Shown: positions 16,951-61,933, numbered from the stretch's first letter. The stretch: DNA of 64,000 bases from Octopus sinensis (GCF_006345805.1 NC_043021.1:14446001-14510000); one strand, 5' to 3'. Notes: a model not told the origin generated them from the letters alone. Numbers and translations: made by a program.

Positions 16951-17001
<51 letters not shown>

Positions 17002-32130: not shown

Positions 32131-32161
<31 letters not shown>

Positions 32162-35595: not shown

Positions 35596-35693
35596 TCATT
35601 TTCAACGAACCACATCCATCTGATGTTGAACCACATCCATCTGATGTTGAAGACGAAACTTTTGAAGAAGAAGAACTCACCGAAAGAGAGAGT
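35596..35693 (+). CDS. KIF20A: Kinesin-6 coding exon 10 (acidic linker)
   Basis: cttttcag| (V)IFNEPHPSDVEPHPSDVEDETFEEEELTERES |gtaaat; phase 1 to 0 fits both neighbours. Confidence 0.75.
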
Positions 35694-36262
35694 GTAAATA
35701 CTATTTTTGTCATTTTCCTTCTCACCATTCATTGTTTCATTTATTCTGGCTTAGTGGTTAGAGTGTTACACTCATGGATCATAGGGCTGTGGTTTCAATT
35801 CCTGTATCAGGCAGTGTGTTGTGTTCTGGAACAAAAACCCTTCATTTCACCTCACTTCCATCCATTCTGCTAACAAAAACAAGTAATCATGCAACAGACC
35901 AATGTCCCATCCAGTGGGGAATATATATATGCCTCAGAAAGCTGGAAACTTGGTCTTAGGCGTCAATATGACTCAAGGAGGAACTTTATCCATCCTCCGT
36001 ATTTTGAAAGGATAACTGTGCCCTTTTGAGTAGCACCATCATCATCATAATCCCTTCTATTAAAGTTATACGGCCTGAAATTTGGTGGGAGGGGGACTAG
36101 TTGATTACATCAACCCCCCAGTGTTTCACTGGTACTTGATTTATCGATCCCAAAAGGATGAAAGGCAAATGTCGGCCCCGGTGGAATTTGAACTCAGAAT
36201 GTAAAGACGGATGAAATGCTGCTAAGCATTTTGCTAGTGATTCTGCCAGCTCGCTACCTTAA

Positions 36263-36483
36263 CCCTTTTGTTACTGTATTTATTTTGAGATGCTCTGTTT
36301 CTTTCAATTATTTTAGATATAAGTAAGAATTTATTAGTAAAATAACTTAGTTATCATTAAGTTAGTGTTAGGAGTGTAAATTGTGACTAAGGTTTGGTGG
36401 AATATTTTAATTCAAAACTTATGAAAACAAGACATTTTACCACAGAGCCAGAGCCGGTTTTGGCTGGGTTAGTAACAAAAGGG
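36263..36483. mobile_element. piggyBac-type MITE family A (reverse orientation)
   Basis: TTAA-CCCTTTTG...CAAAAGGG-TTAA. Confidence 0.85.
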
Positions 36484-37267
36484 TTAAATAATAATAATAA
36501 TACTTTTGGCGTTAGGAAGGGCATCCAGCTGTAGAAACTCTGCCAGATCAGATTGGAGCCTGGTGCAGCCATCTGGCTCACCAGTCCCCAGTCAAACTGT
36601 CCAACCCATGCCAGCATGGAAAGCGGACGTTAAATGATGATGATGATGAATATTAATAATTCTTTCTACTATAGGCGCAAGGCCTGAAGTTTAGGGAAGG
36701 GGACTAGTAGATTACAATAACCCCAGTACTCAACTGGTACTTATTTCATTGACCCCCCAAAAGGATGATAAGTAAATTCAACCTTGGTGGAATTTGAACT
36801 CAGAATATAGTGGCAGACGAAATACCACTAAGCAATTTAGCTGATGTGCTAACGATTCTGCAAGCTCGCTGTCTTAGGTCAAATTACTGATATAGGCACA
36901 AGGGTTGGAATTTTTTTTTTTTTTTTAATTTTTATCTAGTTTCAGCTCACAAGCTGTGGCCATGCTGGGGCACTGCCATGGTGAGGTTAGGCAATACCAT
37001 TAACTCAGTGTTTGTCTGGTGCCCTTTTTTTCTTTATTGACCTCACCTCCTCACTTCCAAAGGATGAAAGGAAAACTTGACCAAGGTCAGATTCCAACTC
37101 AGAGAAAATGCCTCCAGGATCATAGGGCTGTGGTTTCAATTCCTGTATCAGGTAGTGTGGAAATGCCTCCAGGCATTTTCTCTGATGCGCTAATGATTTT
37201 TCCCAGCTTGGCAGAGAAAGGGCTCAATCGATATTAACCCCAGCACTTGGTTGGTACTCTATTTTAA

Positions 37268-37488
37268 CCCTTTAGCATTCAGATTTCTTTGTGAAATTTA
37301 TTGCTTATTTATCCATACTGTTTTTGAATTAATCACATATTATTTTGCAGCTTCAAAATTTAAATGGTGTGGCTATATATTTTTAAAATAACATTGTAGG
37401 GTAGGTGTGAGAGGTTGGATCCAGACAGTTTTAACATAAAACAGATGGATTATTTGGGCCGGATATGGCCGGATTAAATGCTAAAGGG
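37268..37488. mobile_element. piggyBac-type MITE family B
   Basis: TTAA-CCCTTTAGCATT...AATGCTAAAGGG-TTAA. Confidence 0.9.
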
Positions 37489-38272
37489 TTAAAGAGTATA
37501 GGGGCAAAGTTGACTATAGCAGGATTTGAACTCAGAATGTAAACAGCTGGAAGAGATACAGCACTGTATTTTCCCCCCATCAATCCTGCCATCTTGCTGC
37601 CTCCATAATAATATTCTTTTTAATCTTGACACAACGCTAAATAAAATGAAGTTCTAGTCAAGTTTGCTGTTGATGTAATCGATTATCCCTGTGCCCCTAA
37701 TATTGCTGGCCTTGTGCCAAAGTTTAAAGCAATTAGATGGCGAGGTGGCAGAATCGTTAGCACACCTGGCAAAATGCTTAGCAGCATTTTGTCTGTCTTC
37801 ACATTCTGAGTTCAAATTCTGCTGAGGTCAACTTTACCTTTTAATCTTTCAGGGTCAGTAAAACAAGTTCCAGTTAAACACTGGGGGTCAATGTAATCGA
37901 CTTACCCCTCTCTCAAAATTGCTGGCCTTGTGCCAGAATTTGAAATCATTATCATTATCACCATTGTTGTTGTCGTCGTTGTCGTTAGGGTGGCAAGCTG
38001 GCAGAAGTGTGAGCACGTCAGGTGAAACGCTTAGCAGTATTTTGTCTGCTGCCACATCCTGAGTTCAAATTCCACCGAGGTCGACTTAGCCTTTCACTGT
38101 GGTCAATGTAATTGACTAACCCCAAAATTTTCAAGGCCTTGTGCCTAGAGTACAAATTATTATTATTGTTATTATTATTATTATTATCCTGTTTTGTCCC
38201 TTTATGTTTTCTAATCATGTGTGTCAGCCCTTGTGGCCAATAAAAAGAATTAATTATTATTGTTTGTCTCAG

Positions 38273-38433
38273 GGATTGTTGAACATCATAGAGACGTGCA
38301 AGACAAAGATTTCTTGGCTACAGAAATTGTTGACCGAGGAGAAAAAGAACCGAATGTTGGACGAAATAAAGATACGAGAAGAAGTGACCAAGGAGGTGAT
38401 GAAACAGTTTGTTATCATTGAAAAGAGTTACAA
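38273..38433 (+). CDS. KIF20A: Kinesin-6 coding exon 11 (first coiled coil)
   Basis: GLLNIIETCK...LTEEKKNRMLDEIKIREEVTKEVMKQF (IREEV motif of the KIF20 stalk); tctcag| and AA|gtgagt; phase 0 to 2. Confidence 0.9.
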
Positions 38434-38477
38434 GTGAGTAGACCGGTTTTATTTGTTGCTTAAATACACAGCTTCAT

Positions 38478-38970
38478 TTACTCTTTACTTTTTTACTCTT
38501 TTATTTGTTTCAGTCATTTGACTGCGGCCATGCTGGAGCACTGCCTTTAGTCGAGCAAATCGACCCCAGGACTTATTCTTTGTAAGCTGAGTACTTATTC
38601 TATCGGTCTCTTTTGCCGAACCGCTAAGTTACGGGGACATAAACACACCAGCATCGGTTGTCAAGTGATTTTAGCCCCTTGTGGGTAGTAAAGAAATAGG
38701 TATTTCGTCTGCCGCCATGTATGACATAAACACACCATATCGATTGACAAGCGATGTTGGGGGGCACAAACATATACACACACGTACATACATATATATA
38801 TATATATGACAGGCTTCTTTCAGTTTCCGTCTTCCAAATCCATTCACAAGGCTTTAGTCAGCCCAAGGCTATAGTAGAAGACACTTGCCCAAGGTGCTAC
38901 GCAGTGGGACTGAACCCGGAACCATGTGGTTGGTAAACCAGCTACTTACCGCACAGCCACTCTTGCGCCT
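38478..38970 (-). mobile_element. S2 SINE interrupted by a short S1 junction fragment
   Basis: gacataaacacacca duplicated around ttagccccttgtgggtagtaaagaaataggtatttcgtctgcc (~38670-38715). Confidence 0.75.
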
Positions 38971-39042
38971 ATCAGGATCATTTGTGTATTTCAGCAATAA
39001 TATAACAACAAAAAGGGTCAAAGTGATTTAAATTAAAATCTC

Positions 39043-39335
39043 TAATTAAAATTCCATGTTAATTTATAATCAGAGTACCAGCTTGAAGACACTAATTAAA
39101 ATTATGTTAATTTATAATCAGAGTACAAGCTTGAAGACACTAATTAAAATTCCATGTTAATTCATAATCAGAGTGCCAGCTTGAAGACTAATTAAAATTC
39201 CATGTTAATTTATAATCAGAGTACCAGCTTGAAGACACTAATTAAAATTCCATGTTAATTCATAATCAGAGTACCAGCTTGAAGACTAATTAAAATTCCA
39301 TGTTAATTTATACTCAGAGTACCAGCTTGAAGACA
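39043..39335. repeat. 48-50-bp minisatellite, 6 copies
   Basis: Unit taattaaaattccatgttaatttataatcagagtaccagcttgaagacac. Confidence 0.95.
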
Positions 39336-39457
39336 GTTAATTTATTAACCTTATTTTCAAGTATAATTGAAGTGTATATCAACAGGAATATGATACTGAA
39401 AGGTTTAAATAAATGCAGGTATAATTGATATTCATCTCTGTTTTCATTTGGTAACAG

Positions 39458-39623
39458 TGAAAAACTCCGTGCCAGTCAGCTGGAAGCAGAAGAAAGGTCC
39501 AATCGGTGTGTATTGAAGATGCTGAACACCGTAAGCTCCAAGAAGCGTTCTCATGATGAGGTGGAGAGTGAAGAGAAAGTTGTACCTTTGCATGTGTTTG
39601 AAGAACTGCAAGAGAAGAAACAG
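39458..39623 (+). CDS. KIF20A: Kinesin-6 coding exon 12
   Basis: taacag| (N)EKLRASQLEAEERS...ELQEKKQ |gtaggt; phase 2 to 0. Confidence 0.85.
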
Positions 39624-39699
39624 GTAGGTTGGATAATGGCTTCTTTGGATCTGAAATGTGTGTTTGTGTTGGTGGTATTTGTATCTCTTCATGAGGCGG

Positions 39700-40077
39700 C
39701 AATCTGGCGGAAACGTTAGCACGCCGGGTGAAATGCATAGCTGTATTTCGTCTGCTGTTACATTCTGAGTTCAAATTCCGCCGAGGTCGATAAATTAAGT
39801 ACCAGTTGCGCACTGGGGTCAATATAATCGACTTGATCCGTTTGTTTGTCCCTCTGTGTTTAGCCCCTTGTGGGTAGTAAAGAAATAGGTATTTCGTCTG
39901 CCACTGCGTTCTGAGTTCAAATTCTACCGAGGTCGACTTTGCCTTTCATCCTTCGGGGTCGATAAATTAAGTACCAGTTATGCACTGGGATCGATATAAT
40001 TGACTTAATCCGTTTGTCTGTCCTTGTTTGTCCCCTCTGTGTTTAGCCCCTTGTGGGTAGTAAAGAAATAGGTATTT
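39700..40077 (+). mobile_element. S1 SINE dimer (first unit internally deleted)
   Basis: Invariant junction aaagaaata|ggtatttcg at ~39888. Confidence 0.8.
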
Positions 40078-40750
40078 GTATTTCTTCATCTGTCAGGGTT
40101 GTTGGTGTTTAGTAGTGCTTGTGTGTCTGATGGCATTGTTTGATTGTGTTGCTGGATGCCCTTCCTAATGCCAACCACTACAAGAGTGTAGTAGGTACTA
40201 TTTACGTGCCACCACCATCGGCCATGATTACAATCTCACTTGGCTTCTCAGGTCTTCACAAGCACGGTATATCAACTGAGACCTTTGGCAAAACTACCAT
40301 GCTTGTGAAAACCTGTCAGGCCAAGTGAGGTCGTGGCCGATGCCAGTGTCTCATCAATGGCACCCATCCTGGGGGTACATAATAAGCATCCACTGCACTC
40401 TTGGAGTGGTTGACATTAGGAAGGGCATCCAGGCATAGAAACCAAGCCAAATCAGATGGGAACCTGTTTGCATCTCCCCAGCTTACCAGTTTTCAGTTAA
40501 ACTGTCCAACCCATGCCAGCATGGATAAAGCAGATGTTAAATGATGATGATGCTGTTATTTGATAGTATGTGTGGTTGTCTCTTGATGTATGTGTATACA
40601 TGTAATGCACACCTGTAGTTGGCACTGAGGTGATAGTGTTGTTATGTATGTGTGTGCGTATCAGAGAGAGAGGGGCAGGTAATCATGTCATTTGTAATTA
40701 TTAAAAAACCAATTGTATTTAAATTATATTCTCTCTTCTCCTTCTCTCAG

Positions 40751-40900
40751 GAATGTGAATTGAAAATCGAAAAACTAAACCAACAGCTCGAATCAACAAA
40801 AGCTCAGCTGCGAAGGCTGACATTGGATCGTTCTGCATTGCAATCAGAGAAGACCTCCTTACAACTGCAATTAGAGGTTCCTGGTCTCTACAAGAATACG
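40751..40900 (+). CDS. KIF20A: Kinesin-6 coding exon 13 (coiled coil)
   Basis: ctctcag| ECELKIEKLNQQLESTKAQLRRL...YKNT |gtaagt; phase 0 to 0. Confidence 0.85.
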
Positions 40901-41169
40901 GTAAGTCTCTTGGCTATGAAATGAAATGAAAATGCCTCATTATCCTTAATGGAACAAAGAGAACTTGTTGATTTGGCGGATCATCCTCACCAAAAGCTGT
41001 CTTGTTTGGCAGTCACTGAGTATTAAAAGAAACATCTGATGGTTTATTCTATCTTCTTGTGTTCTGAGGTCAGATTTGCCTTTCATGTTTCTGGGATTCA
41101 TAAAAGGCAAATGAGTCTATGGCAGCCAACTTGTGGGATTAAAGCATCTCACAAGATACATTATGATAT

Positions 41170-41549
41170 TTTTACTCTTTACTCTTTTACTTGTTTCAGT
41201 CATTTGACTGCGGCCATGCTGGAGCACCGCCTTTAATCGAGCAACTCGACCCCGGGACTTATTATTCTATGTCTCTTTTGCCGAACCGCTAAGTAATGGG
41301 GACGTAAACACACCAGCATCGGTTGTCAAGCAATGCTCGGGAGACAAACATAACACGCACACACATATATATATATACATATATACGACGGGCTTCTTTC
41401 AGTTTCCGTCTACCAAATCCACTCACAAGGCATTGGTCGGCCCGGGGCTATAGCAGAAGACACTTGCCCAAGGTGCCACGCAGTGGGACTGAACCCGGAA
41501 CCATGTGGTTGGTTAGCAAGCTACTTACCACACAGCCACTCCTGCGCCT
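41170..41549 (-). mobile_element. Full-length S2 SINE
   Basis: Family match. Confidence 0.85.
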
Positions 41550-41559
41550 ATCTGATTCA

Positions 41560-42275
41560 GTTCTTTGCATTCTTAGTTCAAATCCTGCCAAAGTCTAATA
41601 CTTATACTTCAGCCTTTCTCTGCTGTAGGCTATCGATGGATTTCCTCTTGACTCTGGACTATCCTTTTTGCATTCCTCATATTAGATTCCTGCTTTTTTT
41701 CAGCTCCACATCAGTATCCTACCACCAGCTATTTTATCTTCTACCTCCCTTATGACTTCTAGGTCAGAACATGACGTGTAATGCAGAATGTTGGTTTCCA
41801 TAATATGTGGTCTGTCCTTTCAGGTTTTGCTGCACTCCATCGTGTTTCCCTGAGAGAAGGCTTTTCTCCACTGTTCTGTTCTTAAACTTAGCCTGTCTTT
41901 TCTGCTTCTCTCTCATCATGTCCCTGCTTTTTCCATCTCGACCTCAGTGCCCTAACACCAGCTACATTTGGAGCATTCTCTCTTCCCCCTTATGGGTTCT
42001 AGGTTAGAGCCAGATGTTGGTTTCCTTTTATTTCCCCCAAGGGAAGGCCTCTTTCTCCCAGGTTTTCTTTTTTTGTTTTATCTAGAGGTGTCGGTCCGAC
42101 ATAAATCCATTTTCACCTCTGGGAAGAGGTGGTCCATATTATCTGACCTCTTCCTTTGACCTGTTAAGCATGGGAGACCCTAACCAGGAACTTGCACTCT
42201 GCTAGCATAATTCTCAGGGTCATTGAAGCACCCAAGTCACTACACTGTAACAAGGACTGGACCTTGTGGTGACCA
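41560..42275 (-). mobile_element. Highly decayed RTE LINE 5' end / endonuclease relic
   Basis: - strand ccttgttacagtgtagtgacttgggtgcttcaatgaccctgagaattatgc...ggtctcccatgc resembles RTE/BovB 5' ends; downstream frames are broken. Confidence 0.45.
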
Positions 42276-42832
42276 CAACCTAATTGGGTGTAAGCTTTTC
42301 ATCTGTTACCACTTGGGGTAGGGCAGGGTCTGGTGGGGACTTTAAGTCGAGTTGTTGCATTTTTACAAGCCAGATATCCTGTTTGAGTATATCTTTGCCT
42401 TCTTCCTCTGCTTCTCCAATCTTGGAGTCCCTGGAAATGGTCATGGACAGTACCCTTCCCTCACGACTAAACAATATTACCAAAAGAAAACAAAAGCAAA
42501 TTGTCTGATCTGATCCTTACCATGAGAAACAAGTCTCCCCCCTGGATAACGTGCTAGTCCACTTTGTAATCCTTAGCAACTAGGTCAACTGTGGGACATG
42601 TAGACTTACATTTAGTCTAGTTTGTTTTTAATGTTTTAGTCAGGGTATAGTAGAGGGCAGTAGCCATATCTTCAGTTGAACCCCTACAGTAGCTGGAGAT
42701 GTAGCAGAAGACACTTGTCCTAAGTGCTGCTCAGTAGGACTCACCCTGGGACCAATGGTTGGGAAACAAGCTTCTCAACCACACAGCCACACTTGCACCT
42801 ATTCTTTCTCTATTTTAGATAATGTTGTTTAA

Positions 42833-43049
42833 CCCTTTTGTTACTAACCTGGCCAAAACCGGCTCTGGCTATGTGGTAAAATGTCTTGTTTTCATAAGTT
42901 TTGAATTAAAATCTTCCACCAAACCTTAGTCACAATTTATGTTCCTAACACTAACTTAATGATACTAAGTTATTTTACTAAATTCTTTGTTATAGTTAGT
43001 AATTGAAAGAAACACAGAGCATCTCAAAATAAATACGGTAACGAAAGGG
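42833..43049. mobile_element. piggyBac-type MITE family A
   Basis: TTAA-CCCTTTTG...CGAAAGGG-TTAA. Confidence 0.85.
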
Positions 43050-43150
43050 TTAATATAGACTTTAAAAAAATATCAAGTATGTTACCTGTAATATGAATTG
43101 TACGATTATTAGGCAGTCTGTATGATATTTATTTTGTTCATTTTGGTCAG

Positions 43151-43249
43151 GTGGATAATACAAGTATGGGCGACAACATTGAACAGGCAAATGTCTTGAA
43201 CAAATTGACCAGTATGCTCAGAGACACCCAAGAAAAACTGGGAAATAAG
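43151..43249 (+). CDS. KIF20A: Kinesin-6 coding exon 14
   Basis: ttggtcag| VDNTSMGDNIEQANVLNKLTSMLRDTQEKLGNK |gtatgt; phase 0 to 0. Confidence 0.8.
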
Positions 43250-43546
43250 GTATGTTTTAATCCTTTTGTTACCATATTCCTGTTAAAGAAATATATCCAC
43301 TTTATTTCAATTAATTTAAAAAATAATGAATATAGTAAAATAATTTCCATATTCCTATCGAAATATATTTCAATTAATTTCCAAAATAAAGAATATAGAG
43401 GATATATTCCTTGGAGCAAAGATTGTTTGCCAACATAACATGGCAGTCCTTGTTTAGGATGCATGTTGCTGTAATTTAGCCCCAGGAGACATCGTCTCCA
43501 GTTGGCTATATGACACGATCTGTGTCATTTTCGAACAACAATATCT

Positions 43547-44305
43547 GGATCTTTTCCTTTTGATCGGCAGATGTCAACACAATTTCTAGTTAACTATACA
43601 CTTTTAAACTTCGTATACTGGTAGAATGTGTTTATAAAACATCATAATTCTATAGTTTGTAACATATTTCCACTATAAAATCGAGCATTTTGGCAATTTT
43701 AACCAATCAAATACGTCCATTTGGAGTCAAAACATACCGTGCTGTATGAATATGCCCCTCATTTAAGAAACAGATTGGGTTTATTTACATTTGCAAAGAA
43801 AAAAAAGATACCCTTTCCCCACCCCTAACCCTAATCCTAAAATAGATTGAAATGCAATAGATCAATACCAGGGCCATAATTATGGATGACATTTTCATTT
43901 GACACCGCTAGAAAAAAAAATCCCATTTTCCATAGCGGTGTCGTATGAAATCATCACCCATAATTATGGCCCTGGTATCGATCTATTGCATTTCAATCTA
44001 TTTTAGGGGTGGGGGAAGGGTAACTTTTTTTCTTCGCAAATGTAAATAAACCCAATCTGTTTCTTAAATGAGGGGCATATTCATACAGTACAGAATCTTT
44101 TCACCCCAAATGGAGGTGAGCGATTGGTTAAAATTGCCAAAATGCTCGATTTTAAAGTGGGAATATGTTATAACATATAGAATTTTCTCGATAAAGCCAA
44201 GAAAAAATGATGTTTTATAAACACATTCTACCAGTATACGAAGTTTAAAAGTGTTTAGTTAACTAGAAATTGTGTTGACATCTGTCGTTCAAAAGGAAAA
44301 GATTC
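43547..44305. mobile_element. ~760-bp near-perfect foldback MITE (GGATC family) with 8-bp TSD
   Basis: Arms of ~365 bp are reverse complements around a short spacer near 43912-43932; TSD CAATATCT at 43539-46 and 44306-13. Confidence 0.9.
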
Positions 44306-45290
44306 CAATATCTGTATCGTGATTTCCGGGTTGTTTCTTTTTGTCAGCACAGAATAATTGTTCAGCTAGAGGTGGCGCTGCCAAATTCCCGTTGGAAAAA
44401 CATAGCTTTCAAAGTGACAACTAGTCACTGATCTATAAATTAGGATATATTCCTGGCAAAATATATCATCTTTATTTCAATTAATTTCAAAGATAATGAA
44501 TATAATAAAATGATTTAAGCTGATTGATGGGACATAAACTAACCTGAAAATTTTAATTTACATCACTAGATGCCCTTCCTAATGCGAACCACTCCGAGAG
44601 TGTAGTGGGTGCTTTTACATGCCACCGGCACGAGGGCCAGTTAGACTCTAAGCACACATGACAGGCTTCATCAGCATCACCATCATCGTTTAACATCCAC
44701 CTTCCATCCTGGCATGGGTTGAATGGTGTGACGGGAGCTAGCCAGGCAGGAGCCTGCACCAAACTTCTGTGTCTGTTTTGGCAGGGTTTTTACAGCTGGA
44801 TACCCTTCCTAAGGCCAACCACTTTACAGTGTGTACTAAGGGCTTTTCAGGTGGCACCAGCACAGGCGAGGTTAGTTTTGGCATGATTTTTACAACTGGA
44901 TGCCCTTCCAAATGCCAACCACTTCAGAGTGGACTGGATGCTTTTTATGTGACATCAGTAGTGGCAGGGTCACCAAGTAACTTGCAAGATAAGAAACCTT
45001 TGAAGGGGGATGGGGAGTTGGTGGAGGTGTTTCCCCTGCACCAAATCCACTCATGAAGTTTTGATTGGCCCAGGATTATAGTATAAGACACTCGACCAGG
45101 GTATAACACAGTGAGATTGAACCTGAAATCAAAGTGGCCAGGAAGAAAATTTTTATCACAGCCATATTCTGACTAGGCATTTGAGAAATATCGTGAAGGT
45201 AAGGTGTTGGGAAAGATTTAACTGCTTTTTCTTGCATGGTGAGAGGTGTAATTACGCTTGTAGTCATGGAAGTTGCTATTGATGTTCTAG

Positions 45291-45401
45291 GAATCTGCCG
45301 TGAATGAATTGGAAGAGCAGCTCGAAGAAGCTGGTGAAACTTTCAAAGAACAACAAGAGAAGATAGAGCAGCTGGAGAAGATGGTGAAAGAAATGAAGAA
45401 G
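45291..45401 (+). CDS. KIF20A: Kinesin-6 coding exon 15 (coiled coil)
   Basis: gttctag| ESAVNELEEQLEEAGETFKEQQEKIEQLEKMVKEMKK |gtaaga; phase 0 to 0. Confidence 0.85.
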
Positions 45402-47927: not shown

Positions 47928-48518
47928 ACATCGACAGAATGCAAAGTGTGTCTGGAGAGAAGTGAAGCTGGGTCGCCAGTCGGGTCAAAAGCTAAATTGC
48001 AGAAGATGGAGTCTGTTCCGGAAAAGGCATCAGGTACAAACACTACTCTTCCTTTTCAAGGCACAACCAATGAAAAACGAGTTACTAGGAAAATGGTTTG
48101 TAATGGTATGGCTGCAAATGGACACAGAACTAATGATCTCATCACCACCAGTGTCCGTGGTGTCGTTGTGGAGAAGGCAGACGAGTCTCGTGTGCTACGG
48201 CTTTTGCTCAACAATACCAATAGCAGTAACTTGGTTCCAACACCGACAAAGACCAGCTTGCTACGCATGAAGAAATTTTCTTTGAAACAGTCTGACATTG
48301 AAAATAGCCCACCTGGTTTTGTTGGTAAGCTTAATAAGGGAGGCAAGAAGAAAGAGAGCTTGCGGCATCGTTTGCTGGCGCCGATCTGCTCCAATCTGAT
48401 TGCTGACAAGAAAAAGAAGAAAGGCGAAATAAGGAATCGGCGCCGCTCTAGTTTAGTTTGCAATAAACGTACTTCTCTTGATATAAGCAAAAAATATAAT
48501 TTACGAAGCAAAAGATGA
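47928..48518 (+). CDS. KIF20A: Kinesin-6 coding exon 16 (terminal exon of the 964-aa isoform; internal donor at 48033)
   Basis: cttttcag| TSTECKVCLERS...KKKKKGEIRNRRRSS...KKYNLRSKR-TGA; phase 0; total CDS 2895 nt. Confidence 0.8.
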   Translation, partial: TSTECKVCLERSEAGSPVGSKAKLQKMESVPEKASGTNTTLPFQGTTNEKRVTRKMVCNGMAANGHRTNDLITTSVRGVVVEKADESRVLRLLLNNTNSSNLVPTPTKTSLLRMKKFSLKQSDIENSPPGFVGKLNKGGKKKESLRHRLLAPICSNLIADKKKKKGEIRNRRRSSLVCNKRTSLDISKKYNLRSKR

Positions 48519-48626
48519 TTCCATTTTAGATTAATTTAAACAGGAAGATTATACCAAAATAATTAGGGGCTGTCTTGGGTAAATTGATACCAGAAAGGTT
48601 AATAATGTGTATACTATTTATGGTGA

Positions 48627-48632
48627 AATAAA
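48627..48632 (+). terminator. Candidate polyadenylation signal of the short isoform
   Basis: AATAAA 109 nt after the stop; weak on its own in AT-rich DNA. Confidence 0.35.
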
Positions 48633-49789
48633 ACATATTTTAGAAACGTAACATTATGTAGCAGAATGAAATATTGTAATGATCGGGCAATTTGTTCATT
48701 GTGAGCCTTGCAGCTACAGTGAACTAGAAAAGTTTCAATATCTGATAGCAGATGTTATTGACAAGGGTCAGATTTCATTACAATATTAAAACATTTGCAG
48801 GTCTTTCACTTTCCTTGGCTAAAACCAAGTTCAACTAGTTTAAAAAGTGGCACCTTTTAGAATTATCATAAATAAGATATAGCAATTAGATTTGTCTGTG
48901 GCTCCCAAATGTCTCAATTTTTTAATATGTTCATATCATCTCTAAACGTGATACAGACAAAACTGTTGTGGAAAACCAATATTATACCATCTGAATCAAA
49001 GTTGCAAATTTTGTAGTTGGTAGTTTTATACAAGACAATCTCAAATTTAGAGGAAGTGACGCAAAAACAAATGTCTTTAAAGCATCAATGGCCATGTTAT
49101 TTCAGAAGCAGGGGAAGGTTCCTTTTATCATTATTATTTAAATTTTTTTAATTTTTCGAGATTTCTTTTAATTTGCTGGAGTATGTCGTGGATAATAATA
49201 CTGAATTGATTGTGAATCTGTGTAATAACTACCTGAATTACGATGAATGTCTGCAATCAGTCTGTTGTGGATGAGATGTGAGGACTTGAATTAACCACTG
49301 TGTGTGTGTGTGTAATTTTGATCAGAGATTAAATGAAAGCTGATTTATCTCTTACATATCATTGTCCATGATGTTTGGTGTTGACAGTGATGATGATTGT
49401 CGTGAATGTGACAGATTTTTTTGAAAGAATCAGAAATTATGGAATAAATTTGTAAAGGTCCCGGCAAATTTTTGTTGTCTTGTTCTTTTTTTTTTTTTTT
49501 TGATTTGTTTTGTTGTATTGATTGAAGGGAATTCATTTCCCCCCTTTGAAAACCAGAGAAATCTTCACCTGAAGTCAATACTAACCTAAACTTTTGTTTT
49601 GGTTTCAGGTGAAGACCACTCCTGGCTGTTTGACCACACGGTCTCAATATGGTTTCAGTTTTTATTTATTTATTTTTCTCACTCCACCTCACGAGCATGT
49701 CTTGGCTTGCATCCTGGCCCAGGGTGGTGTTCGACAAAGGTGTAATCTGATGTCATGTGATACTAGACTGCACCTTGACCTTGGCTTTT

Positions 49790-49905
49790 CTCTCTCTCTC
49801 TCTCCTCCTCCTCCTCCTCTCTCTCCTCCTCCTCTCTCTCTCCTCCTCCTCCTCTCTCTCCTCCTCTCTCTCCTCCTCTTTCTTCCTCCTTATCTCTTTT
49901 TCTCT
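49790..49905. repeat. (CT)n/(CCT)n polypyrimidine tract
   Basis: Direct inspection. Confidence 0.85.
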
Positions 49906-50911
49906 CCATTTGCACAATACTCAGAGCCATGCTACAAACTGGAGTTTTGCCTCTTAAACTGGCAATTTAATCAATACTGGAGCCAGGTATTGTTGTCATC
50001 ATTGCTGTTGCTGCTTAGACCCATAAACGTATGACCAAAGGTATTTTAACTGACCAATGTGTCATTTCCATTTTTAAGATGCTCAGGTGTGATTTGAGGG
50101 AAATGCAACTCCTAGCAGATCAAGCTCCCTCCATTCTACAGACTCTATCTCTCGCTTGTATGGCTTAAAAGTTGTATTGAAAATGTGATGATTAATCTGT
50201 TTTGAGCAAGATCTTACTACTATTTCTAACAAATCGAGTCCCCTCCCTGCCATAGTTTCTCTCTGGTTGTCTTGAAAATATGATGACCAAGGGGGGGTTA
50301 CTTCTGTTGGGAACAAGAAAGAAGCTAGTGAGAGTAGATTATCTCCCCTTAACAGAAGCTAGTTTACATAAAACATCAGCATGAGAATAACGTATGTAGA
50401 TCAGTGTTCTGCAAGCGGCATGCTGGGGTGCCACAGTGTAACCTGAATGTAATTTTTTTGTCCCCTATACTTTTACTTATATTTATTTCAAAATTCAGTG
50501 GCACACCTAAACTAAAAATATAAGTCTTGCAATTGAAAAAAAACCCAAAAGATTTGCAGAGCACTAATGCATGTGTGTTAGTTTCCCAACTGCTTGATAA
50601 CCAGTGTTGGCTTGTGACTTAGGGGTTACTGAGAAGAACGACTACTTTGGGAACTAATTATGTGTTACGGCTAGATTTTTATCTACCTGGCTGTGCGATA
50701 AGTAATTTGCTTCCCAACCACACTGTTCTGGGTTCAGTCCCACTATGTGGCACCTTGGGCAAGTGTCTTGTGAGTGGATTTGGTTGGCGGAAACTGAAAG
50801 AATCCTTTTGTGTGTGTTTGTGTTTGGCACCACCACAACTACTTGACAGTTGGAGTTGGTGTATTTACATCTCTGTAACTTAGTAGTTCAGCAAAAGAGA
50901 CTGATAGAATA

Positions 50912-51279
50912 GGATCTTTCCCTTTTGACCGACAGATTTAAAAAGTAATTTTCTTTAAGTTAACACTTTCAAACTTCGGACATTGGTAGAATATGTCATA
51001 AAATATCTTTTACTCTTAGCACTTTTGAGAAAAGTTATATTTGTCTTGCTGACAAATAACGGCAGTAATTTTATTCAGCTGAATACCCGTCATTGATTGT
51101 TTGAAATTACCAAAATATGAGAACTTTAGCGTGAAATAACTTCGTAAATATAAGTTTTTCTCAAAAGTGCTAAGAGTAAAAGATGTTTTATACGACACAT
51201 TCTACCAGTGTCCGAAGTTTGAAAGTGTTTAGTGAAAGAAAGTTATTTTTTAAATCTGTAGGTCAAAAGGTAAAGATCC
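50912..51279. mobile_element. GGATC...GATCC MITE inserted into an S2 SINE, 8-bp TSD
   Basis: TSD ATAGAATA at 50904-11 and 51280-87. Confidence 0.9.
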
Positions 51280-51430
51280 ATAGAATAAGTACTGGAGTGG
51301 ATTGGCAGAATTGTTAGAGCATTGGGAAAATTCTTTGTGGGACTTGTTTCTGTTCTTTACATTGAGTTCAAATCCCACTGAGGTCAACTTCTCTTTTCAC
51401 CTTTTCTAGGTCAAGTTGCAGCATATTTTA

Positions 51431-51721
51431 TCTTTATGTATAAAAGTGAAGTTGTGTGAGTGTCTGTCTCCTACGATTTAGATTCCTAACTACTCCCACA
51501 TTTTGCGGTGCAGTTAAACCAAAAGCGGGTATCTTATAGTCTTGATTCATATTGAGCCCTTCTGGGTATTAGTGCGCATCTACGATTTAAAAAAAAATTT
51601 ACCACCAATTTTCCACATTTTTAATGCAATTTTTGCTATTATATAAGGGAAGTAACTCTCTAAAAATGCTTATATAGTTATTTCCCTTAGAAACCCGAGC
51701 AACGCCGGGCAATACTGCTAG
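51431..51721 (+). mobile_element. Non-autonomous Helitron
   Basis: Starts A|TCtttatgtataaaag; ends with GC-rich hairpin cccgagcaacgccggg and ...CTAG|T. Confidence 0.8.
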
Positions 51722-51879
51722 TAATGAATAAAAGAATTATCAGTTTAGACTAGTATAAGGAAGGTGATGCCATCTGGTGTCTTTTTTTTTTTTTTTATTT
51801 TGGTTGTGTGGTTGCAATTGTGAACTCAATGAAAAAGGGTGCTTGTTGCTGCCAATAGCTGAACTGGAGGACAAAGGTT

Positions 51880-52290
51880 CGGCTCTCAAGTCCTTCTTGT
51901 CTTGCTTTACAGTTGTGAAACATACCCTGTCTGGGGCTCTTAGGAGCCACCTGAACCCCTCTGGTACCAAGATGCTTTGCAGGATTATGGGTTACCATTG
52001 GTTGGTTTTTGTATCTGACCAACAACTCTACTCCGAAACTGACATGCGTCTGGTTACTTGTATGATTTGAGAGTGTCAGCTCAGACTGTTTGGTCATGCT
52101 TGGATATTTTTTTCCTTTTTCCGAGCTGGATCGTGGGTACCATGTTTTTCTTTGAGGATCCAGCTGGTGGGTGATGGTTTGTGTTAGTTGACAACATGCC
52201 ACCGCAGAAATGGAGGACTGCCTGGGATGACCTGAGCAGATACTGACAAATGGTGGATGCTGCAACGGCGCATTCCTTTACACCTGACCT
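51880..52290 (+). mobile_element. Decayed RTE LINE 3' fragment
   Basis: GTKMLCRIMGYHW..VSDQQLYSETDMRLVTCMI*ECQLRLFGHA. Confidence 0.7.
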
Positions 52291-52364
52291 GGAGGGAAGG
52301 AGGAGGGCAGGGTCCTCAAACCAGAGGTCTGGCCCCCAAATAGCTGTAGCAGATTGGACTTTAA

Positions 52365-52583
52365 CCCTTTAGTGTTCGCATTATTCTGCCAAAATTAATC
52401 CTTTTTTATCCACATTGTTTTGAACTAATCATGCATTATCTTGTAACTGAAAATTTGATGAGGTAGCTGTTAATTTTTAAAACGATATTGTAGGGCTTGT
52501 GTGAGAGACCAGATCTGGCCAGTTTGAACATAAAACAGGCAGAATACTTTTGGCCGGATATGGCCAGTTTAAATGCTAAAGGG
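52365..52583. mobile_element. piggyBac MITE B followed directly by a mariner-derived MITE body
   Basis: TTAA-bounded; downstream gggtattgtgaaag...ggcttagaaaaactgaaggacctctgcaataagtgtgtgaat (GLEKLKDLCNKCVN, mariner C-terminus-like). Confidence 0.8.
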
Positions 52584-53132
52584 TTAAGGGTATTGTGAAA
52601 GAATTGGTTGGAGGCCCAACCTTCTGAGTTCCTTTACAGGGCTTAGAAAAACTGAAGGACCTCTGCAATAAGTGTGTGAATCCGAGGGGGGAATATGAAT
52701 ATGAATACTAAAGGGTTAAGGGCACTCAAAGACCAGGTAGTGATGCAAAACCAACCTCTCCCCAGTAGGGTTTGAACTTACAAAAACAAATACTGCAAGG
52801 TATCACATCTGAATCTAACATTTCTGCCAGTCCATATAACTTAATAAAAGGTTATTTGTAAAAATTTATGATAGAATGTAACATTTTTGCTTCCCGTTGG
52901 AGACACCCCCAGGCTATATTCTTGATATTCCATGGAATTCACCACCAATTTGCGATAGTGATATTTTTTGTCTGAAGTCTCACATTACTGTAATTCAAAC
53001 CACATTATCCAAATTTTAGGAATTCTACAGAACTTGGATATGAAAAGAGTATAGAATTTCTGTCGTTTCTTTCATTGGAATGCTGTCCTCCATAAAATAA
53101 TTTCTGTGAAAAAGAAGCAATTAATGCTTATA

Positions 53133-53354
53133 CAAGGTGTTCAAAAAGTCTCTCCGCAGTGAATTTTTTCATCCTGACTCTCCAAGATGCATTTCAAAAC
53201 ATGTGTAGAAGAGTCAACTTATGTATTGAAAATGAAGGACAACACCTCTTATAAAGTTTTTTAAAGTCTAATGTATTCTTTTGTAGTCTTATGCTATCTT
53301 AAAAATTATTTTGCTATAAAATACTTACTGCGGAGAGACCTATTGAACACCCTG
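53133..53354. mobile_element. Tc1/mariner-derived MITE
   Basis: TA-caaggtgttcaaaaagtctctccgcagt ... actgcggagagacctattgaacaccctg; internal RVNLCIENEGQHL remnant. Confidence 0.75.
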
Positions 53355-54569
53355 TTTAATATAATCTGACACGTAAGTGCTGGTGTGGTAAGAAGTTTGC
53401 GTCCTAGCTGTTTGGCTCTGGGTTCTAGTCTCACTGCATGGCACCTGGGGCAAGTGTGTTTTACTATATTTTCAGGCCGACCAAAGCCTTGAGTAGATTT
53501 GGTAGACAGAAACTGAGAGGTGTGGGTATGTTTATTGTTCTGTGTCACCGCTTGAGAACCAGTGTTGGTTTGTTTCCTTCCCCATAACTTAGGTTTGGCA
53601 AACAAGACTGATAGAGTAAGTACCAGGCTTAAAGAAAAAAAAATATTGGGGTTAATTAGTTTGACTAAAAATTCAAGGTCATGTGCCATCATGGCTCCAG
53701 TCTAACCAAGGTGTCACACAGTGGGACCGAATCCAGAACCATGTGGTTGGTAAGCAAGCTACTTACCACACAGCCACTCTTAATATATATGCGTGTGTGT
53801 CTGCATCTGTGTTTGTCCCCCCATCATCACTGGACTACCTGTGTTGGTGTGTTTACATCCCCTTTAACTTAGCAGCTCAGCAAAAGAAACCACAGAATTA
53901 AGTACCAGGCTAAAAAGAAATGATAGTAAGTAATGGGGGTTGATTCATTCAACTAAGTGTTTGTCAAAGCAGTGCTCCAGCATGACCGCAATCTAGTGGC
54001 TGAAGCAAATAAAAAGATGGAGAAGATAAAAAAAATATGTATGTGGCACGTAAAAAGCAGCATCTGAACATGGCCGATGCCAGTGCCGCCTTCATTGGCT
54101 CCCATGCCAGTGGCACGTAAGAAGCACCGTCTGATTATGGTCAGTGCCTGGCCCCTGTGCCGGTGGCATGTAAAAAAAAGCACCCACCAACACTCTCAGA
54201 GTGGTTGGCGTTAGGAAGGGCATCCAGCTGTAGAAACACTGCCAGATGAGACTGGAGCCTGGTGCAGTACGGAAAACGGATGTTAAACGATGATGTGCAC
54301 TTGTGGTGGTGCCACATAAAATGCATTTGTGCCACTGCCATATAAAATGCCCTCTGCTGATGGCACATAAAAAGCACCCATGCTGGTGGCACATAAAATG
54401 CACCCAGCACACTCTAAAGTGGTTGGCATTAGGAAGGGCATCCAGCCCTAGAAACCATGCCACAACAGACAGTTGGAGCCTGGACAGCTGTCCGGTTTAC
54501 CATCTCCTGTCAAACTGTCCAACCCAAAGTTGGAGATATAATTCATAACCTCCTCTGAAATATTTAGGC

Positions 54570-55745
54570 AGAGGCATGACTGTTTGGTAAGAAGTTTGCT
54601 TCCCAACCGCATGGTTCTGGGTTCAATACCACTGCATGACACCTTAGGCAAGTATCTTCTACTATGACTCAAGCTGACCAAAACCTTGTGAGTGGATTTG
54701 GGAATTGTTAGATGGAACTGAAAGAAGCCTATTTGTGTGTGTTTGTGATTGTCCCCCACCACTGCTTGACAACCCATGTTGGTGTGTTTATGTCCCCATA
54801 CTTTTGCAGTTTGGCAAAAAAGACCAATTGAATAAGTACCAGGCTTAAAAAAAAAGAAATAAGTATTGAAGTTGATTCCTTTGACTGTGGTAAGTAGCTT
54901 GCTTATCAACCACATGGTTCCAGGTTCAGTCCCACTGCGTGACACCTTGGGCAAGTGTCTTCTACTATAGCCTCGGGCCAACCAAAGCTTTGTGAGTGGA
55001 TTTGGTAGAGGGAAACTAAAAGAAGCCCATCATATATATATATACATGCATGTGTCCCCGCCCCTTACATCGCTTGACAACTGATCCTGGTGTGTTTACG
55101 TCACCGTAACTTAGCAGTTTGGCAAAAAAGACCGATAGAATAAGCACTAGGCTTACAAAGAATAAATCCTGGGGTCGATTTGCTCGACTGAAGGCGGTGC
55201 TCCAGCATGGCCGCAGTCAAAATGACTGTAACAAGTAAAAGGGTAAAGGTGGTGCCCCAGCATGGCAACAGTCTAATGACTGAACCAAGCAAAAGTAAAA
55301 GCTAATTAAAACACGGTGTGTAATTTCTTTTTAGAAATTGAGTCATATAAAAAATTTGGGTTTTATTTTATATTTAGGTGCAGGAGTGGCTGTGTGGTAA
55401 GAAACTTGCTTCCCAACCACATGGTTCTGGGTTCAGTTCCACTGCATGATACCTTAGGCAAGTGTCTTCTACTATAGCCTCAGGCCAACTAATGTCTTAC
55501 GAGTGGATTTGGTAGACAGAAACTGAAAGAAGCCCCTCCTCTGTGTGTGTGTGTCTGTTGTCCTCCTCCACCACCTCTTCACGACTGGTGTTGGTGCATT
55601 TACACCCCCATAACTTAGTGGTTTGGCAAATGAGATTGATAAAATAAGTACCAGGCTTAAAATTAAGTCGCAGGGGTCAATTTATTCAACTAAAAATTCC
55701 TCAAGGCAGTGCCCCAGCATGGCCACAGTCTGAAACAAGTAAAAA
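54570..55745 (+). mobile_element. Cluster of three tandem-oriented S2 SINEs
   Basis: Heads at ~54575, ~54885 and ~55378. Confidence 0.75.
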
Positions 55746-55823
55746 AAAAAAAAAAGGATAAAATTTATTGCCTTTATTATTTTCTTCATTCCTATATTAA
55801 TTTTATCTCCCATTTCTTTCCAG

Positions 55824-58210
55824 AAGGCACCCAACCTGTGGAGAATGTTGCAGAATTTGAGCTGCGAGAACGTGCTTTAATTCATGGTTACAATGCCGAG
55901 ATAGCAAAGTACAAGCTATTGGTTCGGAAACTTCGTCAAGAACTTGGCTTTCGCAACACCAGTCACCTCTCACCAAATAAAAGCCTACGTCCCGAACTCA
56001 GCAGTTGTCTAGAACATAATGAGCTGAAGCAGTATTTACTGCGTCAGGTAAAGAAACTTCAAGACGAACTGGACAAAAACTCTCAGTGTGTGTCTGAGTT
56101 GCTTCATGAACTCGAAGTTAAGAAGGCTGCAGAGACGGATTTAGAAGAGAGGTTAGAGAAAGAAGCGAAGGGACACCAGCAGGCCAAAGCTGCTGTGTCT
56201 GAGATGAGAGAGAAGCTGAAGAAATTGAATGAAAGATGTCGTTCGTCGTCCTTCGAGGCAGAAAAAACTTATTTAACAATCAACAGTGAGATGTTTGACA
56301 GTGGAGATTGTGTTCTGTCTTGCAAAGAGAACAAAGATGAGGAATTTGCTTTGGGTGTTAAGAAATCTGATGAAAACCAGTCTGAGCATAGTGATGGGAA
56401 CAAGGAGGCAAGGAATAAAATAGTCAAGACGAAGAAAGAGAGTCCTCTTTTGAGCATCGAGAATCAAAATGACACGAAACTGTCTGTGTTTGATAATCAT
56501 AACTTGAAGGATAAAATAATTAATAAGAATAAGGAAATCTTGAAATTACAAGAGACACTGCTTTCATATTCAGAACTGGACTCCAAATATCAAAAGAAAA
56601 TCAAAGAAAATGAGGAACTTTTATGCAAAGTTCAAAAGCATGGAACTCTCGAACGTGATCTTAAAAAGAAAGTGAAAAATTTAGAAGCAAAAGTAGAAAA
56701 GATAGTGGTGTTTGAAGTTGAGATAGAGAGCCAAGTTGCCATCATTAAACACCTTCAATCAGCGGTGGATGAGAAATCTAAATTATTGTCTGATCTTCAG
56801 AGTCAGAATGGTGGAGAAAGTCCCATGTTGAAACGGAAGATGGAAGAGATGCAAACTGTGATGGAAGGTTTGCGTGAAATGGTCGATGACAGCACAAAAG
56901 AACTGGCCAAAAATAATGAGAAAATCAGTGATTTGGAAAACAAAGAAAAGATGGTGTCTTCTCTTCAGACAGAATTGGAAACCTTGAAATCTTGTCAGAG
57001 TAGTTTGAAGTCTGAGGCTAAGATTAAGTCTGATTCTCTTCAGAGTAAACTTGATGAGTTGCAATCTGAGAAAGACAAGGTCTGCAAAGAAAAAGATTGT
57101 TTAGAGAATGAAGTGATTCAGTTGAAAGAGCTTGTTGAGAAGAAAACAGAAGAAATGTCTAGTTTGAGAACAGAGCTGAAAGCCAAAGACATTGAGAGTG
57201 AGAAAGAAAATGTATTGGTTATCAATAACTTGAAGAATACATTACACAATGCAGTAAGTGAACGGGAAGGTGTGGTGCAGGAATTGGCAGAAGCTAAAGA
57301 GAAACTGTTGGGAAAAGATGAAGAAATCTGCCAAATGTCCAAAAAGATTGAGGAATATGAGAAAAAATTAGAAGACTCAAAGACTGAATTGGAAGCTGTT
57401 CAGGAAAAGAAAAGTATTGAAAGTGATGCTCTGAATGATATAATTAACGAGATGAACAACAAAATAGCTAGCATGAACCTACTGAAGGAAAAACTTCAGA
57501 AAGAAATAGTGAATGTTGCGGAACATTTGAAATCTTTGAAAACGGAACTGGCTACAGTTCGTCAACTGAAATTAGACATGGATGACAATGTGAAGAGCTA
57601 TATGGCAGATCTGAAGTCTAACCTGAGTGAAATTACTGGTCTTACTACTGCTGCTGCTGCTGCTCACTGTGATAAGTCGATGTTGACCGATTTGGAGATG
57701 CTGCCTGAAAAGAAGGAAATTGAATCTCTGAATTTGAAGATAGTTGACTTGGAGAAAGATCTGGAAGACAATGTTCATGTGAGAGAAAATTTTATGATTG
57801 AAATTTCCTGCCTTGTGGCATCATTGAAAAATAAAGACCAACAAATAGAAAATTTAACCAAAGACAAAATCCAGGCATCTGAGGAAGAATCTTCAGAGAA
57901 GAAAGTAAATCTTGAAAGTGATGTTGGATCTGAACACACAAGGAATCGATTGTCCAGTGAGAAATCCGATGATCTGAGTTCATCATCATCATCATCAGGT
58001 GAGAAACAGCACCACCAGGTGTCACCACCAAAGAAACCAGCCCGTCAGTCGGCACCAACGAAGCCAAGAAGACAGTCATTATGTAAGAAACAAGATGGAG
58101 ACACACAGACTTCTCCTGAGAAGCAGGACAGGGTTAAACAGACAACTCCTGAGATGCAAGTCGGATCCACGCAGACGTCTCCTGAGAAGCAGGAGAGACT
58201 TTCAAATATG
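55824..58210 (+). CDS. 2387-nt coiled-coil exon (probably the long KIF20B-like isoform of the kinesin-6 gene)
   Basis: catttctttccag| ... ATG|gtatgt; 795 uninterrupted K/E/L-rich heptad codons; phase 1 to 0. The linkage to the motor exons is inference. Confidence 0.85.
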
Positions 58211-59962: not shown

Positions 59963-60398
59963 ACAAAGAAAGCAAAACAAGAAGAAAATGAAGAAACTAT
60001 GCAGATGGATGAAACCAATTCAGAGAACTTTGGTGACAAGCATCATGTGAACTTGATGAAACAAGAGCTGGGATCGATGGCGTCAAAACTGGAGTCTTTG
60101 CAGAAGTTCTACGACGACGAGAAATCCTTAAACGATGAAGTTAAGTCTGAACTGAATGATGTCAAGGTGAAGCTGTCCGAAGTGAAAGCTTCATACGAGG
60201 CCGAGAAATCTGTGACTCACCGGCTTCGTTATGATCTAAATGATGTGAGGAGCAGCTTGAACGAGGTGCTTGAATCATACGAGCAGTTGAACCTATCCCG
60301 GAGCGTAGTGCTTGGCGATGATCAACCTGAGGTTAATGAACAGACAATAAAGTCGTTACTTAACGAGCTTACCCTGCCACAGCAGGACATCATCAACG
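59963..60398 (+). CDS. Coiled-coil exon following the large exon
   Basis: T-rich tract then aag| TKKAKQEENEE...LESLQKFYDDEKSL...QDIIN G|gtaagt; phase 0 to 1. Confidence 0.8.
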
Positions 60399-61877: not shown

Positions 61878-61878
61878 C

Positions 61879-61933
<55 letters not shown>

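Follow-up and report, generated by a model that had tools for sequence, protein, structure and literature searches.

One Octopus Kinesin-6 Gene with a Probable Composite Terminal Exon Likely Encodes Both a KIF20A-Sized and a KIF20B-Sized Motor

A Probable Single Locus for Short and Long Kinesin-6 Motors

KIF20A (MKLP2) and KIF20B have been studied as separate motors of cytokinesis and abscission, with roles in brain growth and in cancer. The present analysis concerns a 64,000-nucleotide (nt) stretch of the Octopus sinensis genome (GCF_006345805.1, NC_043021.1:14446001-14510000), hereafter called the window and numbered from its first base, which carries one kinesin gene on the + strand, with its start codon region from 20249. 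An initial annotation, made from the sequence alone, had proposed that exon 16 of this gene might be either read through or spliced from an internal donor, so that one kinesin-6 locus could provide both a short, KIF20A-sized and a long, KIF20B-sized motor. Two kinds of comparative evidence lend support to this proposal, namely the long RefSeq models of relatives and selection on the read-through part of the exon, and we consider it likely that exon 16 is a composite terminal exon of a single kinesin-6 gene from which both products are made.

In the arrangement that best explains the data, exons 1-15 would be constitutive, so that motor, neck, and first coiled coil would be present in all transcripts. 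In the long form, a weak 5' splice site (CAG/GUACAA; the slash marks the exon border here and below) at 48033 would be joined to exon 17 at 55824, yielding a KIF20B-like long-stalk motor of at least 2000 amino acids (aa) in the window and at least 2192 aa in Octopus bimaculoides. In the short form, the site at 48033 would be ignored, translation would go on for 161 codons to the TGA at 48516, and cleavage and polyadenylation would follow downstream, with the AATAAA at 48627 as the probable signal. The short product would then be a 964-aa, KIF20A-sized motor with a basic and probably disordered tail, which may confer Cdk1-regulated microtubule binding, by analogy with the basic C-terminal stretches of MKLP2.

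The window, which is rich in AT and dense in repeats, is colinear with O. bimaculoides chromosome CM046625.1 (locus L007), at about 88-92% nucleotide identity. The gene model, made of 15 common exons and exon 16, was built from homologues (tblastn) and from the bookkeeping of exon phases; with exon 4 taken as 24686-24761, its read-through protein has exactly the 964 aa and the basic KKYNLRSKR end given in the initial annotation. Its features are as follows, those past 48033 being assigned to one or the other predicted isoform (ORF, open reading frame; UTR, untranslated region; dN/dS, ratio of nonsynonymous to synonymous substitutions per site).

20249..20434, + strand: exon 1, with the start codon (MTSRETILSS...); its N-terminus matches that of the O. 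bimaculoides model XP_052832821.1
20906..33755, + strand: exons 2-9, kinesin-6 motor, from Pfam PF00225, the 5ND2 match, tblastn, and phases
20906-21161, 23117-23304, 24686-24761, 27095-27298, + strand: exons 2-5
28186-28297, 30093-30164, 31633-31779, 33478-33755, + strand: exons 6-9
35596..45401, + strand: exons 10-15, neck and first coiled coil, common to both isoforms and colinear with XP_052832821.1
35596-35693, 38273-38433, 39458-39623, + strand: exons 10-12
40751-40900, 43151-43249, 45291-45401, + strand: exons 13-15; exon 15 holds the EAGETF motif
47928-48518, + strand: whole exon 16, with acceptor ttttcag/ACA at 47928, open to the TGA at 48516-48518
47928..48033, + strand: exon 16a, common to both isoforms, ending at the weak phase-1 donor CAG/gtacaa
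48034..48518, + strand: putative read-through tail of the short isoform, intronic for the long isoform; from dN/dS, indels in threes, and the kept ORF and stop
48627..48632, + strand: AATAAA, candidate poly(A) signal of the short mRNA, at motif level only
48034-55823, + strand: whole intron of the long isoform, 7.8 kb, the longest of the gene
48519..55823, + strand: remainder of this intron, with the predicted 3' UTR of the short form, repeats, and a conserved hairpin block at about 49510-49680
55824..58210, + strand: exon 17, coiled-coil stalk, 2387 nt, with a phase-1 acceptor, beginning ..GTQPVENVAEFELRERALIHGYNAEIAKYK
59963..60398, + strand: exon 18, long isoform, colinear with XP_052832821.1
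63233..64000, + strand: exon 19, long isoform, still open at the window end

The model protein matches the Pfam Kinesin family (PF00225) over residues 48-470 (321.5 bits, E = 6.9e-96) and contains the motifs GVTNSGKT, NSSRSH, and DLAGSE. Its motor spans 423 residues against the 327 positions of the Pfam profile, a long loop-6 insertion being present. For KIF20 motors of kinesin-6, two published sources describe such a long loop-6 insertion and a motor about 40% bigger than that of other kinesins (PMC5602324; PMC5909929). The closest solved relatives are the KIF20A/MKLP2 motors 5ND2, 8F18, and 8BJS (358-360 bits, versus 200 bits for the kinesin-6A Zen-4, 5X3E), and the match to 5ND2 is full-length, insert included (residues 35-472 against chain positions 36-488, 360 bits), whereas other kinesin structures align only from about residue 255 on. 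Among the best 120 database matches, every protein with a subfamily name is called KIF20A, most being of 700-840 aa, and the neck motif KIREEV and the motif EAGETF are common to the window model and to KIF20A homologues. By these matches the gene belongs to kinesin-6, of the KIF20 (MKLP2/MPP1) type, with a motor nearer KIF20A/B than KIF23/MKLP1. No further kinesin motor exon was found between 48.6 and 64 kb by tblastn with seven KIF20A-like homologues.

The Internal Donor and the Long Isoform

The donor TCAG/gtacaa after base 48033 leaves one codon base and is thus of phase 1, and the acceptor of exon 17 (ctttccag/AAGGC at 55824) provides two codon bases first, which confirms the fit proposed earlier; such a phase match alone is expected by chance in 1 of 3 cases. 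The junction would encode ...EKAS-E-GTQPVE.... Exons 1-16a, 17 (donor ATG/gtatgt after 58210), 18, and 19 add up to 6001 nt, that is, the predicted single frame of 2000 codons free of stops to the window end, and the long isoform would comprise at least 1197 codons after the junction within the window.

A profile of exon 17, made from an alignment of the window and two relatives, was searched against 1.8 billion representative proteins. It matched XP_052832821.1, "kinesin-like protein KIF20B, partial [Octopus bimaculoides]" (2192 aa), in which exon 17 corresponds to residues 795-1591. This predicted protein uses precisely the junction from 48033 to 55824 (...KKMESVPENAS-E-GTQPVESVAEFELRERALIHGYNAEI..., the junction region reading ...VPENAS-E-GTQPVESVAEF...), extends over exons 18 and 19 as well, and shares 90.8% identity with the window model across all 2000 codons. 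The profile also matched KIF20B of the abalone Haliotis rubra (2625 aa, residues 960-1084) and KIF20B X2 of the scallop Mizuhopecten yessoensis (2766 aa, residues 853-973). In the Haliotis and Mizuhopecten proteins named KIF20B (2625-2774 aa), a KIF20A-like motor is followed by KIREEV, EAGETF, an exon-17 motif (ALI(H/N)GY(N/K)AEI...LLRQ.K.LQ.ELDKNS), and a very long coiled coil. Because abalone and scallop proteins show this same motor-to-stalk order, exon 17, at first an orphan, can be read as the stalk of the kinesin gene. Motor and stalk are joined in four independent RefSeq models from four species; the long isoform is already annotated in relatives and is not a new finding.

In a more distant relative, probably another cephalopod (ENA ERZ21867824, ctg81445l), the tail exon (L003 1802-2617) and an exon-17 homologue about 24 kb downstream (L006) lie on one contig and on the same strand, and the donor (TCAG/GTACTG) and the acceptor (tttcag/AT AAT...) are both of phase 1. 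The exon-17 acceptor is of phase 1 in the window and in four relatives, that is, in all five cephalopod sequences, and the order, strand, and adjacency of tail and stalk are kept across three mollusc classes. The donor pointed out in the initial annotation proved to be conserved as well: AG/GT is kept in three octopuses, the distant relative, a scallop, and an abalone (the window and five further species), and is invariant at synonymous positions too, the codon before being TCA or CAA and the glycine codon always GGT, amid neighbouring residues that differ. This donor is the weakest of the gene's 18 (gtacaa vs. mostly gt[ag]agt), and the intron after it is the longest of the gene in octopus (7.8 kb), scallop (6.9 kb), and abalone (8.1 kb).

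The O. bimaculoides model is partial as it stops at an assembly gap (L007 35677-35831), and a separately called gene of 488 aa at L007 36260-45676 may represent the 3' part that this kinesin model lacks. A tblastn search downstream of the partial model with the C-terminal parts of the abalone and scallop proteins revealed no KIF20B-like distal tail.

The Read-Through Tail

Without splicing at 48033, the remaining base of the donor codon and positions 48034-48518 make up 161 codons and the TGA, ending in ...SKKYNLRSKR. The octopus tail is basic, with clusters such as KKKKKGEIRNRRRSS and with the motifs RVLRLLL, VPTPTK, TKTSLLR, and KKYNLRSKR. From a stop frequency of about 0.066 per codon, we calculated that a frame of 161 codons would stay open after the donor by chance with a probability of about 2e-5 per species. 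Searching with exon 16 retrieved this ORF from a second octopus (P0003) at 81% identity. The tail of the distant relative (P0004) could be aligned over its C-terminal 120 residues only (55%), but its frame is open to the same stop position and ends in ...SKRYNLRSKN. A small intron in the tail (48034 to about 48150), considered as an explanation for the poorly conserved tail start of this relative, was ruled out, since its candidate acceptor does not keep the frame.

Scallop and abalone have the same organization, with a phase-1 donor at the end of the exon right ahead of the stalk exons (CAAG/GTACAC after 14395 of locus L008 and CAAG/GTAGCA after 24537 of locus L009, respectively) and a read-through frame of about 160 codons inside an annotated intron. 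Their tails share RVL(R/Q).., T(K/R)TSLLRL, and a terminal KYNLR(S/T), and a T-P site is kept as TPTK in cephalopods, TPLK in scallop, and TPIQK in abalone. Excerpts of the predicted tails, each running to its stop codon, read:

Scallop: ...GKRVLQLIVTPLKSKILAHHTRTSLLRLRN...RRRISGKKYNLRSKRF (stop)
Abalone: ...NRVLRVMVTPIQKLMARHTKTSLLRLKT...GSKQKYNLRTRLKF (stop)
Octopus (window): ...SRVLRLLLNNTNSSNLVPTPTKTSLLRMKK...ISKKYNLRSKR (stop)

We addressed selection by the Nei-Gojobori method in an alignment of three octopus genomes (the window, O. bimaculoides, and a Logan contig), separately for the tail (48033-48515) and for the shared exon part (47928-48032). In the three octopus pairs, tail dN/dS is 0.127, 0.18, and 0.058, with dS of 0.13-0.57 and, in one pair, 39 synonymous versus 11 nonsynonymous differences; the shared part is far less constrained (0.39-0.58). 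Indels among the three octopuses are multiples of three only within the tail ORF, and 1- or 2-base indels begin right after the stop. Between Haliotis asinina and H. rubra (L011), the tail shows 15 synonymous and 2 nonsynonymous differences (dN/dS 0.034) and 96% identity, as against 83% in the 3' flank after the stop. As judged from these substitution and indel patterns, the read-through part is real coding sequence under strong purifying selection in octopuses and abalones. The O. bimaculoides assembly has a 40-N gap within the tail ORF (L007 23031-23070).

Synonymous divergence is not uniform along the tail. In the three octopuses, dS is 0.09-0.21 in the first 40 or so codons past the donor versus 0.15-0.72 further in (small numbers), and about 110 nt at 48034-48140 are nearly invariant, synonymous sites included; the same stretch is identical in the two abalones apart from one homopolymer indel. 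Such low synonymous divergence after the donor suggests that splicing-regulatory signals overlap the start of the tail coding sequence.

Candidate Polyadenylation Signal and Intron Content

The AATAAA noticed at first sight near the end of exon 16 lies at 48627-48632, 109 nt past the stop, and is present at the same offset in O. bimaculoides. The nearest poly(A) hexamer past the stop is at +196 in scallop and at +1157 in abalone. Among octopuses, the 200 nt past the stop are 83-90% identical.

The initial annotation had reported no start-bearing coding exon in 48.6-55.8 kb, and this stands: none was conserved in the alignment of the intron with O. bimaculoides, and the tblastn search mentioned above showed no motor exon there. 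A sliding identity scan of the intron against the same species gave a background of 81-90% and one block of 99% at 49501-49600, which was rejected as a hidden conserved exon, being without a conserved frame and followed by a 2-bp indel just downstream; no Rfam match was found in it. The surrounding single-copy block (49500-49780, core 49562-49615), which stands out from a background of about 86-90%, contains a hairpin of 16-17 bp (UCUUCACCUGAAGUCAA...UUGGUUUCAGGUGAAGA; minimum free energy z-score -3.85), as well as TACTAAC, a pyrimidine tract, and CAG, which resemble a branch point and an acceptor between 49608 and 49609. Its role may be that of a cryptic or alternative acceptor, or else of a structured regulatory element in the composite-exon intron.

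Evidence to the Contrary and Alternative Explanations

Several observations weigh against the production of two motors from one composite exon. None of the RefSeq proteins inspected (O. bimaculoides, scallop X1-X3, and both abalones) uses the tail, and no NCBI protein matched in a search with it. Relative to H. asinina, the assembled tail ORF of H. rubra contains two homopolymer indels of 1 bp, one in a run of C and one in a run of G, at about 21.3-22.1 kb of L011. The AATAAA is not kept in the third octopus, which has AGATAA at the aligned site and ATTAAA at +16, and AATAAA/ATTAAA hexamers are frequent by chance in AT-rich DNA. Mollusc and vertebrate KIF20A tails are not significantly similar in hhalign comparisons (probability below 1%, five vs. 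6-23 tails). As for the long form, its junction rests on predicted RefSeq models and is thus of annotation level; the cephalopod contigs retrieved from Logan/ENA are all genomic, with no transcript-derived contig across either junction among them. The H. rubra indels are probably assembly errors, which we assume because its RefSeq protein is flagged LOW QUALITY and because substitutions follow the H. asinina frame. In addition, the RefSeq models of octopus, scallop, and abalone appear to omit a conserved, selected C-terminus of 160 residues.

Other explanations have to be considered. The one that survives best, although we judge it improbable, is that both proteins are made, the short one from transcripts that retain the intron and end at a distal poly(A) site, with no intronic cleavage. 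This would fit the poly(A) hexamer, a weak indicator that is not kept in every species, and the abalone, where neither AATAAA nor ATTAAA occurs within 1.1 kb of the stop. On the other hand, an mRNA that kept this intron, 7.8 kb long here and about 24 kb in the distant relative, would carry many exon junctions after the stop and should normally be degraded by nonsense-mediated decay; intronic polyadenylation typically occurs where a weak 5' splice site precedes an unusually long intron; and the conservation of the 200 nt past the stop among octopuses (83-90%) also speaks against a merely distal site.

It is, in our estimation, still less probable that the window contains two neighbouring genes, a KIF20A orthologue ending at 48518 and a coiled-coil gene starting in 48.6-55.8 kb, the long RefSeq models being fusions created by prediction. 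Two genes would suit the lack of any Pfam match in exons 17-19, the weakness of the donor at 48033, and the best 120 matches of the motor, of which all those with a subfamily name are called KIF20A, mostly at 700-840 aa. Such a separation would leave unexplained, however, why AG/GT is kept at the same phase-1 position amid divergent sequence in octopus, distant relative, scallop, and abalone, why the exon-17 acceptor requires a phase-1 partner in five out of five cephalopod sequences, and why tail and stalk have constant order, strand, and adjacency over three mollusc classes; moreover, four independent RefSeq models link both parts, and the intron alignment with O. bimaculoides is without a conserved start-bearing exon. 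The likeness of the abalone distal tail to the human KIF20B C-terminus, given below, is a further lead against two genes. Lastly, function might be confined to the long isoform, with the read-through frame as an intron start or retention noise that yields no protein. This would agree with the absence of the tail from annotated proteins in the databases searched and with a high conservation just past the donor that could reflect splicing signals rather than coding, but is very hard to reconcile with tail dN/dS of 0.03-0.18 in two independent lineages with many synonymous changes, with indels in threes within the ORF and of 1-2 bp right after the stop, and with an ORF of about 160 codons sharing stop position and motifs in four lineages, such an open frame having a chance probability of about 2e-5 per species.

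A composite terminal exon of one gene is thus the explanation that we favor. From the genomic data we infer the production of the short mRNA, its poly(A) site, and the regulation of the choice between the two forms; the weak donor, the longest intron, and the low dS after the donor would together fit a regulated choice.

Comparison with Known Systems

The short predicted product resembles vertebrate KIF20A/MKLP2 in several respects. Its motor has KIF20A as closest solved relative, the neck motif KIREEV and EAGETF are shared, its length is similar (964 aa vs. about 800-890 aa), and, at motif level only, its tail is basic, with a T-P site and an end of the (K)Y.LRS(K/R)R type. Thus, FLRNLLPRTPT...YARILRSRR in the primate KIF20A tail may be compared with RVLRLLL..VPTPTK...KKYNLRSKR in octopus, and both this primate sequence and RGLLVNIKESMTP..SLCRTIRK in the fish tail with RVLRVMVTP...TKTSLLR...KYNLRSKR in molluscs. 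No Pfam family was found for the tails, and calling them KIF20A-like would rest on size, position after EAGETF, basic composition, and short motifs. Unlike vertebrate KIF20A, which has its own gene, the short form would here share its promoter and 15 exons with the long form. In human MKLP2, unstructured basic C-terminal stretches bundle microtubules, the bundling activity of MKLP2 is suppressed by Cdk1 phosphorylation (PMC4350427), and the C-terminal domain binds the chromosomal passenger complex (PMC4350427; PMC5940148).

The long product, with an N-terminal kinesin-6 motor and a stalk of more than 1000 aa, is similar to vertebrate KIF20B/MPP1 (MPHOSPH1), and RefSeq calls the mollusc orthologues KIF20B. 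It differs in that the mollusc motor scores best with KIF20A; the window stops short of the gene's distal end. KIF20B has been described as vertebrate-specific or absent from invertebrate genomes (PMC9603694; PMC5909929). The mollusc data argue against KIF20B being restricted to vertebrates. Compared with a provisional fragment of the human KIF20B C-terminus, the abalone distal tail gave E = 1e-8 and that of scallop E = 0.013, values to be read as a lead and not as a test. The 2774-aa protein of the scallop M. yessoensis is called KIF20A in UniProt (A0A210QD83) and KIF20B isoform X1 in RefSeq, a double naming due to the combination of a KIF20A-like motor with a KIF20B-like length.

The switch between secreted and membrane forms of immunoglobulin mu, a composite terminal exon with an internal 5' splice site, is the nearest established parallel. 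As there, splicing in the octopus gene would lead to a longer C-terminus, and read-through with an upstream poly(A) site to another C-terminus. The octopus products would differ by more than 1000 stalk residues and not by a short membrane anchor.

Drosophila Subito, the MKLP2 homologue, is a kinesin-6B with a short stalk, whose C-terminal region binds spindle microtubules (PMC5940148). Unlike the octopus gene, it is known as a short protein only, and its N- and C-terminal domains are poorly conserved. We know of no long-stalk alternative described for Subito. Outside molluscs, an intron-less contig of 2497 nt, apparently a eukaryotic transcript (JGI 3300032708, Ga0314669_10007193; L010), encodes a complete KIF20-type kinesin of 787 aa ending in ...NNTQKGKYGLRSKIAKIGTFV, that is, a short kinesin-6B with a KY.LRSK-type end.

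Other Features of the Window and of Related Loci

In H. asinina, protein residues 825-853 match at four tandem positions 128 bp apart (L009 22965-23477), which looks like a local tandem duplication of an exon (the first part of a short coding exon) and its flanks. Upstream of the kinesin gene of O. bimaculoides, on the opposite strand, L007 1-4193 encodes an AAA ATPase similar to 26S proteasome regulatory subunit 7 (Pfam OB_PRS7, AAA, and AAA_lid_3). Positions 641-6856 of the window align to this region, and the 5' end of the window (1-6900, - strand) probably carries part of a 26S proteasome subunit 7-like gene.

A short interspersed repeat, with the translation ...RRASFSFRLPNPLTRLWSARGYSRRHLPKVPRSGTEPGTMWLV..., occurs in many copies and in both orientations, often beside simple repeats of the (TA/CA)n type. 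Interspersed repeats make up much of the difference in intron length between the window and O. bimaculoides. Three stop-free stretches on the + strand, whose translations were judged by eye, resemble transposon remnants. Examples of the repeat and these putative remnants are:

16891-17121, 25288-25509, 32065-32451, 41308-41595, 61641-61940, both orientations: copies of the interspersed repeat
12052-12855, + strand: C-terminal part of a reverse-transcriptase-like protein (about 12.0-12.9 kb), putative
13687-13971 and 46576-46806, + strand: mariner/Tc1-like transposase fragments (about 13.7-14.0 and 46.6-46.8 kb), putative

Implications for Kinesin-6 Evolution

On the evidence of gene structure, the arrangement described here is old, being found in cephalopods, a gastropod, and a bivalve. 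What is new is the short tail and, with it, a dual-output architecture across Mollusca that appears to have gone unannotated. These data suggest that the "vertebrate-specific" KIF20B has much older roots. If one mollusc gene does make both motors, the long-stalk form would be older than vertebrates, the vertebrate pair would be a candidate for the partitioning of isoforms after gene duplication, and the ratio of the two motors would be set by a single decision between splicing and polyadenylation.

We may tentatively go one step further, to a scenario that we hold to be possible but somewhat short of an even chance, in which the ancestral bilaterian kinesin-6B already had two outputs, a short tail obtained by read-through and a spliced long stalk with a distal tail, and in which vertebrate KIF20A and KIF20B each kept one of these isoforms after duplication. 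If so, vertebrates would not have invented KIF20B but would have fixed the long isoform of an ancient gene, and in molluscs a single promoter would still serve both functions, the choice between splicing and polyadenylation being regulated.

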